Both the position numbers and the translations under genes were made by a program. The notes below the pieces were generated by a model that saw nothing but the letters and a program-made list of their open reading frames with translations, was not told where the DNA came from and did not search any database. Shown in pieces: positions 10,901-18,360 of a stretch of DNA of 64,000 nucleotides (position 1 is the first letter of the stretch; every line of letters begins with the position of its first letter). Source of the stretch: Guillardia theta CCMP2712 (Eukaryota > Protista > Cryptophyta). The stretch covers positions 113,912-177,911 of the forward strand of contig NW_005434597.1 in NCBI RefSeq assembly GCF_000315625.1. The letters run 5' to 3'.

Positions 10901-13383
10901 GGAAGATCGAACCGATCGGCAGCAGCGTGCTCGAGCTCGGAAGCGCCTCGCCCATGGACATACGAAGGTGGGAGGATGATGCCAGAGGTTGAGACTGGGA
11001 GTGAGGAACCTGCTGATGTTGATGAGGTCAGAGAGAAGGAAGAAGGCAAGAGGCAAGTGTAGAGGTAGAGGAGGGAAGAGGAGAAGAGAAACGAAGTGAG
11101 ATTTATACCTGGGAGGAGAGATCGGACATGACGAGGAAACGACTGTCTGAATCCTCTGCCAGGCAGAAATCAGGCGACAAGAAACAACTCTGAGCCTTCA
11201 ACGACTGCTCCATCCAGTTCGTCGACTCTACTCCTCCATCGAGCTCTGGATGCTCATCGACCTCCACTGATCCCCCGGGAAGAGAAGTCGACAGAGGAGG
11301 AGGAGGCGACGGCATGGGAACAGCAACTTCATCTCCCTCTCCGACACCTTCTTCCTCTGCCATTCCTCCGTCTTCGCCCTCCTCCTTGACATTGATCTCG
11401 GGTAGCTGCACATCTACCATCCTCTTCCTCGCGAGATAATGTTCAAGAGCCAGGTCCTCGTCATCTTCTTCACCCTCGTCTACTGCGTCATGCTCCTGCT
11501 CCTGCTCCTGCTCCTGCTCCAGTTCAAGCTCCTGTCCCTCGTCCTCGTTGTCGTCGTCTCTTCCTCCTTCCCTTTCCCCTCCCTGTTCCCCCTCATCGTA
11601 ATTCTCTTCAAGGCGCGTGTCTCGGTCTTGCTTCTGCGTGTACATCGACTCAAAGCTTCCTGGTTCTTTCACAGGCGTCAACCTCTCGTCCTCCATATTC
11701 CCGATGATAAACACTGCATCCTCATTCCCCAGTTTCGCTGCCTTGCGCCACATCACCAGCGCACGCTGCTCGTCCCTCTTCGTCCCGATCCCCTCGTGCA
11801 GACACACACCCACGTTGAACATCGCGTCCGCATCTCCCAGCTCCGCCGCCTGCTCCTCGTCACACCTCTCCTCCTCCTGACAGGCCTTACCTTGGAGTAC
11901 CACCAGCACGCCAGCATCGGGTTCGCTTCCACACCTCTTCCTTCCTCGTAGCACACCCCGAGGTTGAACATCGCGTCCACGTCCTCCTCCTGCGCCCGCA
12001 CCAGCAGCTCCTTGACGCTCCAGCTCGAAGACGCTGGTGCTGGTACTTTGGACGAGGAGGGCAGAGCAGTCTTTTGAGTCACGTCTTTGCTAGAGCTCTC
12101 CCCTCCCTTCACAATCTCAAGCTTTCTTTCCGGGTCACTTCTCTCAGGTAAGGAGCTTTCCTTCTCTATCCTCACCCTTTCACTTCTCTCAGCTAAGGAG
12201 CTTTCCTTCTCTATCCTCACCCTTTCACTTCTCTCATCGTCCTCTGTCCTCACTCTTTCGCTTGCTGAATTCTCTGGAAGCTCTTCAACTGGTCCTTTCT
12301 CATTCAGGATTCCTGTGTGGTGACTGCCGGTAGACACAACACGAGCATCCACCTGCTGCTCAGCCCAGGAGTCTCTATCTCCTCTTCTCCTCTGCGCCTG
12401 GTTCATATGCGCATCATTCTCGATCCTCTCGTGTTGCGCTTCTATGCTCCTTCCCCTCTGATCCTTGCTCTCCGACAATGTCGTGGGCATCGGCGTAAAC
12501 GTTCGGCTGTTTTTGAGAACCTAAGCTAGCAAGTCACTGAGTGGCAGAAGCTCAACGGCTCACCGATCGCCGCGAGCTGGCAGCATCGCTCTCCGCACTC
12601 GAGGAGGGAGAGACTGTTGAGGGAGGGTCGTTGACGTCGAAGAAAGCCGGCCCGCTGACGAGGAACGAAACCTGCAGGTTGTGAGGGACAGCAAAGTTCG
12701 TCCTGCACAAGTACCTTCCTTCCTGGCTCAGGAGAAGATACGAGAAGCTCTTGGCCTCCTCCCACTGCCCAAGGAGGCGCTATCGTCTTTGGTCGTTTCC
12801 AGATATCACCAGCATATGGTTGAGAATGATTGGCTGCCCCTTTGGTCGCCATGACATTTGTGGACCCACGTTGTGATGCCTGAGCATTGTCTGGTCTCTC
12901 TCCCTCTTGATGCAGAGCCCATGGAGGAGCGCTGCTTCCATTGTTTTCATGCCCCTGAGCACTTTCGCGCCTACTACCAGCAGGTCTGATGAGGTTTGCT
13001 TCAGCTTTCTCTCTTGGTGCTTGCGCTACTCTCCCTGCTGGATGCGATGGCGTCCTCGCCTCATCTTTCTCGCCATCATCTCTCTCCTGTCGTCTTGTCG
13101 CAAATCGTCTCCCTTTTCCTCCTTCGCCTTCATCGTAGTCTGTAGCCCATGGCGGCTTCAGCATTCCCGTACCCACATCTCCGCTCGTGCCCACTACGCC
13201 CGGCCCGGAGCCCCTGCCGGAGCCCGGCCGACTGAGTTCGCCTGATTGACTGAGGCGAGCCTGAGATGGCACGCCATGCACATAAGCGAGATTGCTGACA
13301 GCTAGTCCCCGTCCTCCCTCCTCCTCTTCCTCCTCTCCTCCTACTTCTATCCTCCTCTCCTCCTCCTCTCCTATCATCAACAT
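7915..13383 (-). CDS. Large multi-exon protein: PPWA motifs, two Sel1-like repeats, (Ala-Pro)n tract, PUB/PUG domain (apparent 1-nt frameshift), C-terminal YDP..YFDP.T..FY motif; 5' end uncertain
   Basis: Sel1: DVDAMFNLGVCYEEGRGVEANPMLACWWYSK|AAELGDADAMFNVGVCLHEGIGTKRDEQRALVMWRKAAKLG. PUB: LRLMRKYFDNVLSNPRES/KYRR|IPKQNKAFKTRIASCPRSRFLLTAVGW. From the Sel1 region downward, exons join in frame through GT-AG introns (SSQ|VPHSQ..MSMGE; EEIIQL|DAKTSS; PPNQ|ATSPHK; YDPSL|GLYFDPKT). The link to the upstream PPWA exon was not traced base by base. Stop TGA at 7917-7915. Confidence 0.72.
8548..8613. repeat. (AGAGG)n pentanucleotide microsatellite inside an intron
   Basis: Directly visible tandem run. 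Confidence 0.9.
10459..10716 (-). repeat. Coding hexanucleotide repeat (GCTGGT)n on + strand, giving ~39 Ala-Pro dipeptides on the - strand
   Basis: Directly visible; lies in frame within the 9486-10961 minus-strand ORF. Confidence 0.92.
12137..12236 (-). repeat. Coding 45-bp tandem duplication (ERSERVRIEKESSL[A/P]) x2 plus a partial copy
   Basis: Two near-identical 45-nt units visible in both DNA and translation. Confidence 0.85.
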
Positions 13384-13439
13384 CCTGTACTTGCCGCGCT
13401 CCTACATATCCTGCGCTTGTTCCTCTGCCCTCCTTCATT

Positions 13440-15406
13440 ATGCTCCTTTACTTGGCATTATTGCTGTGCAACACCATGCCGACTGCACAGGCTTTTCTGC
13501 TTCAAGCGCGTCCTATTCTGATACCTGTGGGCTTCAAAGTCAGCTGCTCATTTTCCGGTGGCATCAGAATGTCTGCGAGTAGCAACAGACCGCTGAGCAA
13601 GGCGATCGACCCTTCAAAGCTCCTAAATGGCTTGTACACGGACGATGATGTCCTCATCTCCGACCTAACATCGCGGTCACGTGCCAACTGGGCGAAGGAT
13701 CTTCTTTCAGTCGCGAGCTCTCGAGTTCTCGCGCGTATATCGCAGAGGATGACCATCACAACAGCTTGGGCAGCATACGTCACAGCTCTCATCACCTGGG
13801 GAGATTACCTCGCTCCTCCTTCCTGGGGGAGTTTCACCCAATTCACCGTTCCTGGCTGGCCCCATGAGCTTGTGGGGGCCTTTCTCTCCATCCTCCTTGT
13901 CTTCAGGACTGATCAGGCGTATGACCGCTTCTGGGAGGGCAGGAAGCAATGGTCTTCACTGAACAGTCAATGTCGGAGCATTTCGAGACTAGTGCTGTCG
14001 AACCTGCCTATTGGAATGGCCCAGGAGTTCTTGTCGCTGGTTGCTCTGTTTCCTGTTGCCTTGAAGCAACATCTTCGAGGTGATAGGAACGAGAGAGAGC
14101 TGGCGGCTGTCTTCCACCTGTTCCAACCCAAGAATGTGAAAACCCTGGAGATTGTGTTGGAGTCAAAGAACATGCCCATGACTGTTGTATGGTGTATGTC
14201 TCAGCTATCAGCACCACTAAGAAAGAACAGAGCCTCGCGGATCTTCAACTACGAGGTGTTGTGGGAGGAGATGGAAGAGAAGCTGTCGGAGCTTGCGGAC
14301 ATTGTCAGCCAATGCGAGAAGATAAAGTGTACGCCACTGCCTCTCAGTTACTCCCGGCACACCAGTCGCTTCTTCTCTTTGTTCTTGTTCTCGTTGCCGC
14401 TGGCCCTAGTGAAGGAAACGTCTCCGCTTCTAGTGCCAACTATCGTCCTCACCACGAGTTGGGTCTTGTTCGCCACAGAAGAGATTGGCCACATCATCGA
14501 AGAGCCTTTCGGCACCATCGACAGCAAGTCGGCTGGTCGTCGTACCCAAAGGCAATCTAGCATCATGGTAGATCTCGAGATGTGGCGACTCGTGCTGAAT
14601 TGATCTTGATGTCCAGGATGTCAAGGTCTACTTCGATAAGGTTGACCTCGACGGTGACGGGTTCATTACTGTGCGGGATATCACGGAGATGCTCCCAGAC
14701 ATTGTCGGGATGAGCGTTTCGAGCTCGCAGGTGAGTTCATCACTCTCATGGCAGGGACATAACGGTCTTCAGGCTGAGCAAGTGCTGTCACGCCTGGACC
14801 TAAATGGAGACAGCAGAGTTGATTTCGAAGAATTCCGCCTTATCTGGGCCTTCATGAATGGCAGTCCTAGACTGGACCGGGTGAAAGAAAAATAGCCCTG
14901 CGTGCACGAAGAGCTGATCACTTCTCAGCTCGAGACTCTGCCGTTGAGTAAGTATTGCGATGCGATCCTCCGGGAACTCTTCTATCTGTGGAGAACACAA
15001 CAATGTTCGGTGCTGCAAGAGACCCTAAGCGATGCTCGTCTCGATGAGGACGCGATCAAGCTTCTTGGTTTGGGTATGTTACCAGTATGAAGACAAAGCT
15101 GTTGAGCCATTCGTAGATCCCAATGCAAGTTCTTCAAAACCTGGTGGGTGGGATAGAGCAGCAGTTTGTGCGTGGGCAAAAAATCTGGGCCTGGAGGAGG
15201 CTGCAAGATTGTTGGAAGCCAATGACGTGGATGGCAAGGTGAGGATTACAAAGGACATGAGGCGTCGGTTGTCAGTGATACTCCTGCAGATACTTGTATC
15301 CTTGAACGAAGAAGACTTGATCGAGATGGGCCTTGATTGTCCCAAAATCCGTTCTCGACTTCTGAATTCGATTCCTGAAGGACTAAGACAGAAACAAGAT
15401 TCATAG
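13440..15406 (+). CDS. Plastid-targeted bestrophin-like anion channel (UPF0187 / VCCN / BST type) with inserted EF-hand pair and C-terminal SAM domain
   Basis: Leader MLLYLALLLCNTMPTAQA-F followed by a Ser/Arg-rich transit peptide. Bestrophin motifs LSILLVFRTDQAYDRFWEGRKQW, CEKIKCTPLPLSYSRHTSRF, EEIGHIIEEPFG and LPLSKYCDAI. EF-hand loops DLDGDGFITVRD and DLNGDSRVDFEE. SAM-like WDRAAVCAWAKNLGL..LEANDVDGK|ILVSLNEEDLIEMGL..IRSRLL. Introns at 14568-14616, ~14731-14772, 14881-14928 and two more. Confidence 0.85.
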
Positions 15407-15446
15407 ATGGGGGGATACAAAAGTGCAATATTATGTACAGTAAATT

Positions 15447-17221
15447 TTACACCCAGTCTCCTTCTCGCAGCTTCCTTGGGAGATATTCTTGAGTGAGGTA
15501 TTGGAATCCCTTGCTTGTGAATGCCTCTGCGCAGACCAAGTAAATCCCTCCGAAGCACAACAAGAAGATCATACGAATTTCTGCTTTTTCCTTTCTCGAA
15601 AGCAGAGTTTCCAGCTCCTAAAAAATGTTTCAGTACAAATAATTGAGGCACTCACATTGCACCTTAACCCAAGCTGATCGTTTCTGAATGTAAGGCTTCT
15701 CTTTTAGACTTTCAGCAAAGCTCACGTCGTGGGTGGTCAGTTCCAATCTATTCTTGAAATGTAACCACAAGAAATCCATCATCAATGATTTACCTGCATT
15801 CTCGTGGAACATTGTACTTGTCCAAATCCGAGGGACGGACTCCCAGCCACTTGATATCAGGCGTAGCGAGATTTGCGCTGTCGTGAGACATTGCCTCCGA
15901 ACCTTGCATGTAAACCGAAAGAATCTTCAACCCATGGGCATCACTATCAAACAATCCGAGAATTGGGATCTTGAGAGCATCCTTGACTCTCCTCAAAAAC
16001 ATTCTTGTAGCCAAATCTGCTTCGCCTTTGCCCTGCATGAAGCTGGTAAGATTCGGGAGATGACTGCACTCGTGCCGCAATGACCGTAATTATCACGCAA
16101 GGATAAGTATTGTAGAATCTGTCTTCTGCCAAACGTTGAAAAGCTGCATCTTTCTCAACTAGAAGGATGAATTCTGCTGGCCTGAAAACAAAAGATCACT
16201 AACTGTCAATCAAAACGACACAAATGTGATGAAGACAATCATGTTCATTTACCGGTCATAGTCTGACTTGATGTTTGAGACCCTGTCGAGACGAGCATGG
16301 TTTACACTTCTGAGGGTAGAAAGAAGCAAATCACCGATCCAAAAATGAAGGGATGTTCTTTCCACTCCTTCCCATCTTTGTACAATCAATGAAGTCGTCA
16401 TCATCATTGAACTGCAATCTTCCAACCACAAGTCCTTTTTCAGATGCCGTGACCTTGTAAAGAATAATCCAAAATGAGAACAGCTGCATAGATATGGCAG
16501 AAATAACCTGCAGACTGTGACGAGTACATCCGAACATCAGTGAAAGTTCCTCCAGCACTGCATCACTGTTCTGCTGCTTCTCGAACAGCTTTACATCCGC
16601 ATAGAACAGATCACGTTTTGTGCTGTGAATTGCAAGTGAGAGGAGCTTCGCGGTAGCGCCAGGTGGTGAGGCAATGCACCTGTGAATGTTCTTCTTCGCC
16701 AATTCATGCACCAACTGCATGAGGCGGGTCATCATCGTCGTTCGCCTGAAGGCACATCATCCAAGGACCGTCTCGCAGCTCTCTCTCGCGTACTTGACTT
16801 GAGAGGAATCAGCAAACTGTCGCTTCATGGCCTTGTACTCAAGATAATTCCTATCAAGCTCGGGCACGAACTGGACATTGGTAGCACTGCCTCGCTGAGC
16901 AAAGGTAAACGCCAGACCTGCACATCAATCTGAGGACGAAGGAGAGGCAGAAACAAACATTCAATCATGACAGAGGTCTATACCTCGGCCATCGAGAATG
17001 GAAGCGACAGCCTGGCATGCGACAAGTTCAATGTTCTTCCTGACTTCTTCCGGGCTCTGATCGGACACTTCGAAGAGGTTCGTATATCCCAGCTCCGAGA
17101 CCGAGGAGGCTGCTTGTGAGGACTGTTGGAGGTGGCGGGCAAGAGTTCTGACTTCCTTGAGCGTCTCCTCCATGTCCTCTTGCGACATGTCCGCCGCTTC
17201 CGCTCGCCGCTTCTTGGACAT
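15447..17221 (-). CDS. TOP6A: DNA topoisomerase VI subunit A (SPO11-3 / TOP6A clade); multi-exon
   Basis: [13 protein letters not shown] (catalytic Tyr), [83 protein letters not shown] and [30 protein letters not shown] are diagnostic of plant/algal SPO11-3. Confidence 0.93.
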
Positions 17222-18360
17222 GACCAGGCCGAAAAACGCGGGAAATCCCACCCGTCCAATTAACGTTAAAACAAATAACATTAAATAGTTGAATTATTGA
17301 TAATATTTCAAAAGTAATGTTAAATGCCCCTAACGGTGCTGCCCTCTCCACCCCGCAAACACCAATTTATACCACCGGTAGTAGAGGGAAAACCCACCCT
17401 ACCCTCGAATCATCTCTATCAGCAGTATCGAATTGAAGGTGGGGGTACTCAAACAGGTGGTGGGTACGGGTAAAGTTTGGGGTAGTGTGCCAAGGGGGTA
17501 ATTCGAAACAGGGGTGCAAATCGAAGTGTGGTGGTAGGTTGACGGGGAAAACAGGGGGTAGGGACGACAGGTAACAAAAGGACTACGGGGGTACTGGGCT
17601 TTGGGAGTTGGGGAGGGGGTAGGGGGTGGAGATGGACGGGTTCGATATACCAGTGGGGTACAGTCTTGACTGAAGAATGGCAGGAGACGACGCGAGGGCG
17701 AATGCGGAGGCGGGGGAGAAGGAGGAGGAGGAGGAGAAGGAGGAGGAGATGTGGGAGGAGATCATAGAGATTACAAGATGAAGTTGGATCACGAGATAGA
17801 ATCAGAATGAGATAATGAGCAGAGCGAACAGAGAGAGGAAACTCTGCGTTGGAGGATTGAGAAACAATGAACAAGATGGCTTTCTGTGATATTCAGGACG
17901 CGACGGATGTGGCATGATAGCCAAGATGATTATGAGTGGATGTTCGGATGATTTGTAAGATGGAGTTACGTAGAGCATGGTTTGAACAAGGAGTGCAGCT
18001 GGATTAGGATGTTTTATTCAGCTCCTGAAGATTGTTTTACGACAATGAGACACCGAGGGCACGAGCAATAATTGTAAGAGGAGGATACCAAGTACACGTT
18101 AGTTTGTCCTTGAAAACAAAGGAAGAGGATGTCGCTTGCTAGACAGAAACACAAATTCAGGCAGTGCCCAATGACTGCTCCTCGCCTCCAACGTGCTTCA
18201 CAACGGGCTTATTTGATAGTAGAACTGATGACTTGGTATCGTTCTAGGATGAGGATTATTCGATCCGTCTCCTAGTTCGTGTCTACGATGAGTAGACTAG
18301 GAGGTGCTTGACACTGCACCTTGATCCGTGAGGGTGGCGAGCTCTATAGTACAAATCAGC

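Follow-up and report, generated by a model that had tools for sequence, protein, structure and literature searches.

A gene of the cryptophyte Guillardia theta CCMP2712, located at 13440-15406 (+) of a 64,000-nt stretch of its genome (the window, to whose whole length all coordinates refer), encodes on one transcript a bestrophin channel core, a pair of EF-hands inserted into the channel domain and a C-terminal SAM domain. In our reading it is a nuclear gene whose product enters the plastid and forms a pentameric anion channel of the Bestrophin_2/VCCN1 type there, most likely a thylakoid one, in which a putatively Ca2+-binding EF-hand pair lies in the loop between the last transmembrane helix (TM4) and helix S8 and a SAM domain follows. 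We put this reading at about 60%, and Ca2+ regulation, which is our best interpretation of the insert, at the same level. A sequence-only reading of the same stretch had proposed a directly Ca2+-gated thylakoid anion channel; what it observed is confirmed here, and its interpretation is partly supported.

One gene and one transcript carry the three domains

The open reading frame (ORF) that begins with the ATG at 13440 ends with an in-frame stop at 14603 (+ strand). Three-frame translation revealed coding potential past this stop, in the form of five further blocks in shifted frames with short GT..AG stretches between them. The resulting gene comprises six exons and 577 codons, a length taken from the coordinates only. 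Its start codon is fixed, since the reading frame, followed upstream from the ATG at 13440, meets a stop (TGA at 13296) with no other start codon on the way. The segment 13297-13439 (+), downstream of that stop, is part of the 5' untranslated region (UTR).

Exon 1 (13440-14567; 376 codons) encodes the signal peptide, a transit-peptide-like stretch, the Bestrophin_2 core from TM1 to TM4 and a linker of 18 residues. It is followed by intron 1 (14568-14616; 49 nt, phase 0), which holds the in-frame stop at 14601-14603. The two EF-hands are encoded by exon 2 (14617-14730; 38 codons, phase 0-0), with the loop DLDGDGFITVRD, and by exon 3 (14773-14880; 36 codons, phase 0-0), with the loop DLNGDSRVDFEE, on either side of intron 2 (14731-14772; 42 nt). 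Past intron 3 (14881-14928; 48 nt, with an in-frame TAG), exon 4 (14929-15073) encodes the S8 helix, beginning LETLPLSKYCDAILREL, and then a linker; its last base belongs to a codon split by intron 4 (15074-15116; 43 nt, phase 1). In exon 5 (15117-15238), a linker leads into the SAM domain, whose N-terminal half is encoded there; together with exon 4 it amounts to 89 codons, including the split one. Finally, intron 5 (15239-15289; 51 nt) precedes exon 6 (15290-15406; 38 codons and the TAG stop), which encodes the SAM domain's C-terminal half. All of these exons and introns lie on the + strand, and the five introns have GT..AG ends and a GC content of approximately 42 to 51%. Although introns 2 and 5 would keep the reading frame open, without a stop, they are spliced out in transcripts.

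Transcript evidence was obtained by placing Logan contigs of four runs on 13300-15600. All five introns were skipped, with GT..AG ends, in one contig each of X1 (2019) and X4 (2014), both of which span the region from 13383 to beyond the stop codon and skip exactly these five introns (the contig joints are listed as, for example, 14566/14616 for intron 1 and 15072/15116 for intron 4, with a cut offset of +1). A contig of X12 (2011), by contrast, was collinear with the window through all five introns. Because it keeps all of them, we took X12 as genomic DNA and X1 and X4 as cDNA assemblies. The removal of the five introns foreseen by the sequence-only reading is thus borne out at the RNA level. 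In the A-run of intron 3, the X12 contig is one base shorter at window position 14888, which is either a polymorphism or a homopolymer error in noncoding sequence.

The 3' end of the transcript, and with it that of the 3' UTR, can be put at about 15451, where the X4 contig stops. On the other side, the X1 and X4 contigs contain 88 and 125 further bases, respectively, upstream of 13383. A CT-rich simple repeat (TCC/TCT runs) occupies 13300-13382, in the 5' UTR or the promoter region; since this tract was masked in read placement, the 5' end of the transcript is unplaced. The raw-read RNA run X18 contributed two reads at approximately 6% sampling, too few for ends, strand or expression level.

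The exon order is also that of the homologues, designated here by P numbers. Exon 2 matches residues 406-443 of the G. theta paralogue P0009, exon 3 matches residues 444-478 of P0009 and 258-284 of P0034, and exon 5 matches residues 590-614 of P0009. Exon 3 begins directly where exon 2 leaves off on P0009 (443/444) and P0006 (355/356); exons 3 and 4 likewise adjoin on P0034 (284/285), and exons 5 and 6 on P0009 (614/615). Furthermore, Tara Oceans metagenome contigs, one of them labelled METAG, encode P0153/P0034, the closest orthologue, and P0020, which belongs to the other EF-hand subclade. There they form uninterrupted ORFs of 420 or 641 aa that run across the core, the insert, S8 and the SAM domain and lack the G. 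theta introns. For these other species, the DNA thus proves that the gene is a single one.

These data bear on the view that the EF-hand and SAM exons constitute a separate downstream gene, or that the true product is a protein of 344-387 aa stopping at 14603. The sole database model of the gene, P0001 (344 aa), indeed reads into intron 1 as far as the stop at 14601-14603, and the removal of the in-frame, stop-free introns 2 and 5 could not have been detected from sequence alone. However, single transcript contigs of two studies join all six exons, transcript-derived orthologues of Chroomonas and Guillardia keep the same exon order, the Tara contigs carry one uninterrupted ORF, and without exon 4 the bestrophin fold would fall short of S8 (profile positions 269-288). 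For the major assembled transcript, the X1 and X4 contigs refute a stop at 14603 or a separate gene, and we consider this view extremely improbable. We conclude that one gene gives rise to one transcript carrying the bestrophin, EF-hand and SAM domains. The contigs leave room for a minor isoform that may retain intron 1. The search for exon 1 homologues, with length limits wide enough to admit one, returned no full-length database model of this gene.

The channel core and the site of the insertion

To assign domains, we searched the exons one by one, reading the EF-hand pair and the SAM domain through their in-frame introns as 14617-14880 and 15119-15403, respectively. Exon 1 matched the Pfam family Bestrophin_2 (PF25539) with 194.4 bits against a cut-off of 27 (3.8e-57), over profile positions 3-268 of 288; the final 20 positions (269-288), outside this match, correspond to exon 4. 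With phmmer, exon 1 matched MdVCCN1 of apple (7ek1) at 9.3e-27, residues 79-359 aligning with residues 51-319 of the chain up to IEEPF, and it matched KpBest at about 1e-15. No similarity to the N-terminal amphipathic and charged helices of VCCN1 (NAH/NCH), on which its activity and gating depend, was found upstream, the 7ek1 alignment starting at chain residue 51, although such helices could still exist. Exons 1 and 4 contain the family motifs FRT..Y.RFWEGR in TM2, P.PLSYSRH.SRF in TM3, IEEPF at the end of TM4 and LPL..YC in S8, all of which sit on invariant or nearly invariant columns of the family alignment; the family motif PLPLSYSRHTSRF is present as well. Additionally, residues A147/I151/F155 of TM2 align with P184/L188/F192 of MdVCCN1, the triad that forms its neck (PMC9076864). 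Given this alignment, the hydrophobic gate is present in the G. theta protein.

The motif IEEPFG occupies residues 353-358 and is followed by 18 further residues of exon 1. Between EEPFG and LETLPL lie 92 residues, 74 of which constitute the two-EF-hand module of exons 2 and 3. Read as a pair, the EF-hands passed two Pfam cut-offs, namely those of EF-hand_1 (39.6 bits against 25.4, 2.5e-10) and of EF-hand_7 (PF13499; 37.8 against 30). The insert of some 90 residues with two EF-hand loops that the sequence-only reading had placed after IEEPFG is therefore real, and Bestrophin_2, EF-hand and SAM, the architecture it had put forward, were all found above cut-off. In agreement with its statement that ordinary family members have a short spacer at this site, a motif census of 128 retrieved proteins gave EEPF-to-LPL gaps of 6-30 aa for ordinary members, which are most of approximately 100 relatives, of 60-80 for a Pavlovales-type group and of 97-152 for the EF-hand group, compared to 92 here. 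The module consists of exactly two phase 0-0 exons flanked by phase-0 introns, which is compatible with an origin by exon shuffling but is no proof of it.

Past the insert, the C-terminal helix of the bestrophin domain resumes, as had been predicted. Exon 4 carries the motif (Q)LE.LPL..YC, which approximately 90 relatives share and which stands after EEPF in nearly all relatives, and it is 51% identical to residues 285-333 of P0034 over all 48 residues. Searched alone, exon 4 had no Pfam match and only chance matches among the PDB sequences (E 1.6), so that the identity of S8 is based on the family alignment and on the model of a paralogue.

This model was built with AlphaFold2 for residues 85-653 of P0009, on an alignment of 68 rows, and served as a proxy for the fold (mean predicted local distance difference test score, pLDDT, 87.2). 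In the model, TM4 (276-298) ends at EEPF and is followed by a poorly defined linker (299-319), by four helices and two short strands that make up the EF-hand pair (320-388) and by a long helix starting from LPL, which is S8 (403-430). A second EF-hand pair and then a SAM bundle come after S8. Aligned with VIA-align, the model gave a Z score of 26.1 with VCCN1 (7ek3; model residues 14-432, 308 residues aligned), of 24.8 with KpBest (44-425, 270 residues aligned) and of approximately 19-20 with the BEST1 and BEST2 structures. Foldseek agreed on the bestrophin fold, with TM-scores of up to 0.81 when normalized by the target. In the superpositions with bestrophins, a stretch of about 110 residues loops out, after which S8 is back at its usual place. 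Residues 317-386 of the model, aligned alone with lobes of Ca2+/calmodulin, gave a Z score of 13 and a root mean square deviation of 1.2-1.3 A. Since S8 returns to the bestrophin fold in the model, the EF-hand pair is an internal insertion and not an appended domain. The window exons are collinear with P0009, from which we infer that the window protein shares this topology.

The location of the insert invites comparison with animal bestrophins. In BEST1, an acidic cluster that forms the Ca2+ clasp directly follows the residues N-P-F-G, and movements of the clasp reach the neck on TM2. The residues after EEPFG in the G. theta protein (TIDSKSAGRR...) are basic, an animal-type acidic clasp (EDDDD) was not found there, and the candidate Ca2+ ligands are those of the two EF-hand loops, 30-80 residues further past EEPFG. 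The clasp of animal bestrophins consists of the acidic cluster E300-D304 (PMC5491579), and in GgBEST1 it lies in the TM4-S8 loop (Hagino et al. 2022, PMC9076864). VCCN1 has none of these acidic residues in its equivalent loop, and its C terminus faces the stroma (PMC9076864). Judging from the model, the cryptophyte EF-hand pair would sit on the stromal face, at the place that corresponds to the Ca2+ sensor of the animal channels. That the insertion falls into the very loop that bears the clasp strengthens the idea of Ca2+ regulation.

Plastid leader, SAM tail and putative Ca2+ competence of the insert

The N terminus begins with a hydrophobic signal-peptide core (residues 1-18, MLLYLALLLC...AQA), with cleavage after AQA and Phe19 as the next residue. 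Residues 19-60 (42 aa) contain six Lys or Arg, one Asp or Glu and eight Ser or Thr, as judged by eye from counts and hydropathy. This is in good agreement with the signal peptide and AQA|F leader noticed in the sequence-only reading. In cryptophytes and diatoms, Phe (or Tyr/Trp/Leu) at +1 separates plastid from periplastid import (PMC12136025). The same layout, with Phe after a hydrophobic leader, recurs in P0009, P0013 and P0024, which are full-length relatives. The leader thus has the features of a bipartite plastid-import signal, predicted to direct the protein to the plastid rather than to the periplastid space.

Within the plastid, the most likely location is the thylakoid. Indeed, the plastid Bestrophin_2 proteins localized so far, that is, VCCN1, Chlamydomonas BST1-4 and diatom BST1-4, are all thylakoid proteins (PMC9076864, PMC6708349, PMC11142338). 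The channel might instead reside in another plastid membrane, for example the inner envelope, where it would mediate Ca2+-controlled exchange of Cl-/HCO3- between the stroma and the periplastid space. The leader shows only import across the outer membranes into the plastid and includes no thylakoid-specifying sequence, and the at least eight G. theta loci that match bestrophin queries could be spread over several membranes. Given the uniform thylakoid location of the proteins named above, we regard an envelope channel as improbable.

Exons 5 and 6 (15119-15403, read with the in-frame intron 5) matched SAM_2 (PF07647) with 26.1 bits against a cut-off of 20.5, so that the C terminus described earlier as SAM-like holds up in a profile search. 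The halves of the domain are distributed over exon 5 (profile positions 3-32) and exon 6 (36-62), with the junction exactly at intron 5. In the window gene, as in P0034 and P0074, S8 leads through a linker of about 45 residues directly into the SAM domain, unlike in P0003, P0006 and P0009, where a second EF-hand pair lies between the two. C-terminal extensions send PtBST3 and CrBST4 to the pyrenoid (PMC11142338). A complex prediction with two copies of the P0009 SAM domain (583-653) scored 0.00, which carries no weight either way.

As for the competence of the insert to bind Ca2+, positions 1, 3, 5, 9 and 12 of both loops are all occupied by D, N, T or E, i.e., by oxygen-bearing ligands. The second loop is canonical in the window gene and in seven of the nine aligned relatives, the exceptions being P0034 and P0074.

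Several observations nevertheless weigh against our reading of the protein as a Ca2+-regulated thylakoid channel. Taken alone, each EF-hand exon stays below the EF-hand_1 (PF00036) cut-off of 25.4 bits (exon 2, 23.4 bits, 3.8e-05; exon 3, 21.8 bits, 1.2e-04). Each loop also has one noncanonical position: in loop 1, position 12 holds Asp in place of Glu, and in loop 2, position 6 holds Ser in place of Gly; such deviations may mean low affinity or a bias toward Mg2+. In the nearest orthologues, P0034 and P0074 (56-68% for exon 1), the ligands are lost in both loops and a Pfam search found no EF-hand match in the inserts, and the first loop is degenerate also in P0003 and P0054. That P0034 and P0074 keep the domain without its ligands argues for an additional, Ca2+-independent role of the insert, be it structural or in docking. 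Furthermore, the fold evidence comes from a paralogue with 53% identity rather than from the window protein. The linker on the N-terminal side of the insert is long and of low confidence in the P0009 model (pLDDT < 50 for residues 305-313), so that the mechanical coupling to TM4 may be weak. Finally, the thylakoid location draws only on the analogy with VCCN1 and with the BST proteins of green algae and diatoms.

Some of these observations would also fit an insert that is mainly structural or that docks a protein, be it as a stromal ring, as a partner site or for the channel's own N terminus. Ca2+ would then play little or no regulatory role, and gating would resemble that of VCCN1, with voltage or a different signal from the stroma as the trigger. 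This is what the retention of insert length and helices in P0034 and P0074 despite the loss of ligands would suggest, together with the degenerate first loop of P0003 and P0054 and the one noncanonical position in each loop of the window gene. However, all side-chain ligand positions are intact in the window gene and in most of its clade, the second loop is widely canonical, and the pair passes the Pfam gathering scores. In addition, intact loops are kept across paralogues that are only 36-55% identical, which implies selection for metal binding. We thus consider a mainly structural or docking insert unlikely and favor a Ca2+-binding one.

EF-hand bestrophins in cryptophytes and their counterparts elsewhere

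The search with exon 1 returned approximately 24 protein clusters that combine Bestrophin_2 with EF-hands, eight of them also with SAM. Every named cluster with the EF-hand insertion is from a cryptophyte, namely Chroomonas sp. CCMP1168 (P0003), Hanusia phi (P0008, P0013) and G. theta (the P0009 cluster). P0013 is present in UniRef as an 'EF-hand domain-containing protein', and other EF-hand or SAM versions are found among MMETSP transcripts. The earlier remark that no such versions were known therefore holds in that we found no paper describing them, but not for public sequence sets, which contain them. In the literature on bestrophins with EF-hands, algae, cryptophytes and thylakoids, we found no description of this architecture, the terms being unconnected with each other in the papers retrieved, although subscription journals were thinly covered and this is not proof of absence. 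The only related mention in the reviews that we found is that VCCN-like genes are present in cryptophytes (PMC5948301).

We then derived a maximum-likelihood tree by quick search from 106 rows, using the core as far as EEPF. The EF-hand rows and the Pavlovales-type group fell inside one set of 34 rows, with a support of 98 in the Shimodaira-Hasegawa-like approximate likelihood ratio test (SH-aLRT). The window gene belongs to a clade of 12 rows (support 99) together with P0002, P0003, P0054 and the P0009 group, and the distinction between insert and no insert requires a single change on this tree. The Pavlovales-type clade (P0027, P0028, P0030, P0035, P0038, P0052, P0059 and P0087), whose named members come from Pavlovales sp. 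CCMP2436 and Diacronema lutheri, is longer by 60-80 residues at the EEPF-to-LPL site, and in this extra stretch we detected no EF-hand and no Pfam match even at E values up to 1. It could be an EF-hand pair that has decayed, or this loop could have expanded independently. In the third homologue search, no named relative of the P0020 clade was nearer than Hanusia phi, at 50%, and the label of an archaeal metagenome-assembled genome on one member of the P0020 cluster was taken for mis-binning.

P0153, which has degenerate EF-hand loops and a SAM domain, occurs on three Tara contigs of 9.9-15 kb (L018, L019 and L020). On one side of it lies an ORF for which two of these contigs give weak PDZ matches, and on the other, in opposite orientation, a ligand-gated channel of the ionotropic glutamate receptor type (PF00060).

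In the G. theta assembly (87.1 Mb, 669 contigs), in which the window is C77:113912-177911, at least eight loci match bestrophin queries, and three genes are taken as EF-hand bestrophins: the window gene, C211 (P0009) and C49 (P0036). P0009 (653 aa, from MMETSP transcripts) contains two EF-hand pairs and a SAM domain; its first 330 residues are 100% and the next 78 are 95% identical to C211. At C211:87138-88395, the contig ends just past EEPFG, which leaves the EF-hand and SAM exons of the P0009 gene outside the assembly and accounts for the NCBI model GUITHDRAFT_148434 being a 388-aa partial one. At C49:249500-256500, the model GUITHDRAFT_163984 (P0036, 466 aa) stops approximately 15 residues past EEPFG, and tblastn with P0024 located EF-hand and tail exons 1.1-2.8 kb further along the locus (L016 4367-6031). 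The C49 paralogue, too, is probably a bestrophin with inserted EF-hands whose public model is cut short. All three G. theta models are truncated, either at or near the EEPFG intron or by the end of a contig, and this has hidden the architecture from domain databases as far as the reference genome of cryptophytes is concerned.

Among known systems, VCCN1 (MdVCCN1, 7ek1-3) and the algal BSTs (Chlamydomonas BST1-4, PtBST1-4) are the closest, as plastid-targeted members of the Bestrophin_2 family that share TM1-TM4 up to IEEPF, the neck positions, the LPL..YC motif of S8 and, for P0009, the fold (Z 26). Their TM4-S8 loop is short and without a Ca2+ site, whereas the window protein has an insert of 92 residues and a SAM domain. 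The animal bestrophins BEST1-4, which are Ca2+-activated Cl- channels, share the fold of the superfamily, the PFG that ends the last transmembrane helix and a Ca2+-binding element (putative in the G. theta protein) right after it, in the TM4-S8 loop and on the cytosolic or stromal face. However, in animals this element is an acidic cluster of five residues (E300-D304) that a neighboring subunit completes, as opposed to a self-contained, calmodulin-type lobe of about 70 residues here. In addition, sequence identity is only about 10-13%, and the G. theta protein lacks the long C-terminal inactivation peptide and is not of the PF01062 type. The resemblance is functional and positional and is most simply explained by convergence.

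A sensor within the same polypeptide is also found in the bestrhodopsins, the rhodopsin-bestrophin fusions of marine algae (7pl9), which are of the algal Bestrophin_2 type as well (6.5e-13). They carry tandem rhodopsins at the N terminus, for light, whereas the G. theta protein has an EF-hand pair inside the channel domain, presumably for Ca2+. Similarly, the K+/H+ antiporter KEA3 of diatoms, which are likewise red-lineage secondary algae, is a thylakoid ion transporter described in a review as carrying its own Ca2+-binding EF-hand on the stromal side (PMC11314055). KEA3 belongs to an unrelated transporter family, and its EF-hand is appended at the C terminus, not inserted.

Two neighboring genes were noted in the window. 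A convergent minus-strand gene at 15456-17900 (-), with ORFs at, e.g., 15793-16080 and 16334-16735, encodes a Spo11/topoisomerase VI subunit A (TOP6A-Spo11 Toprim, 1.6e-29; TP6A_N, 2.9e-16). Its intron at 15527-15574 (CT..AC on the + strand; joint 15526/15575) is spliced out in RNA contigs. In run X1, the transcripts of the Spo11-type gene and of the bestrophin gene were assembled in one contig, which indicates that their 3' ends overlap or are only a few bases apart. Two ORFs with Sel1 repeats (2e-09 and 1.9e-07) at 11106-12490 (-), upstream of the bestrophin gene and on the other strand, are probably exons of one gene.

In the mechanism that we propose, the stromal EF-hand pair would bind Ca2+. 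Being connected to the last transmembrane helix on one side and to S8 on the other, it would transmit its Ca2+-dependent opening to the hydrophobic neck that the alignment places at Ala147/Ile151/Phe155 of TM2. The pair would thereby assume the role that the Ca2+ clasp has at the same loop of animal bestrophins, and the thylakoid Cl-/HCO3- conductance would follow stromal Ca2+. The SAM tail would position or cross-link the channel.

Among thylakoid bestrophins, VCCN1 sets the split of the proton motive force (pmf), and BSTs supply bicarbonate to the CO2-concentrating mechanism. Their gating in vivo is unsettled, and even for VCCN1 the authors of its structure suggested an unknown stromal signal (PMC9076864). 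As a broader and more tentative hypothesis, which we hold to be somewhat less probable than its converse, cryptophytes may have independently reinvented the Ca2+ gating of bestrophins by placing a calmodulin-type lobe, encoded by two symmetric phase-0 exons, in the TM4-S8 loop. Stromal Ca2+ transients would then switch the Cl-/HCO3- conductance and hence the partitioning of the pmf or the supply of CO2, and G. theta would keep three such channels with different tails. The family would represent a clean example of positional convergence with the Ca2+-activated bestrophins of animals, and a built-in Ca2+ sensor at the gating loop would connect Ca2+ signals of the stroma with ion flux across the thylakoid, a connection that can be tested.

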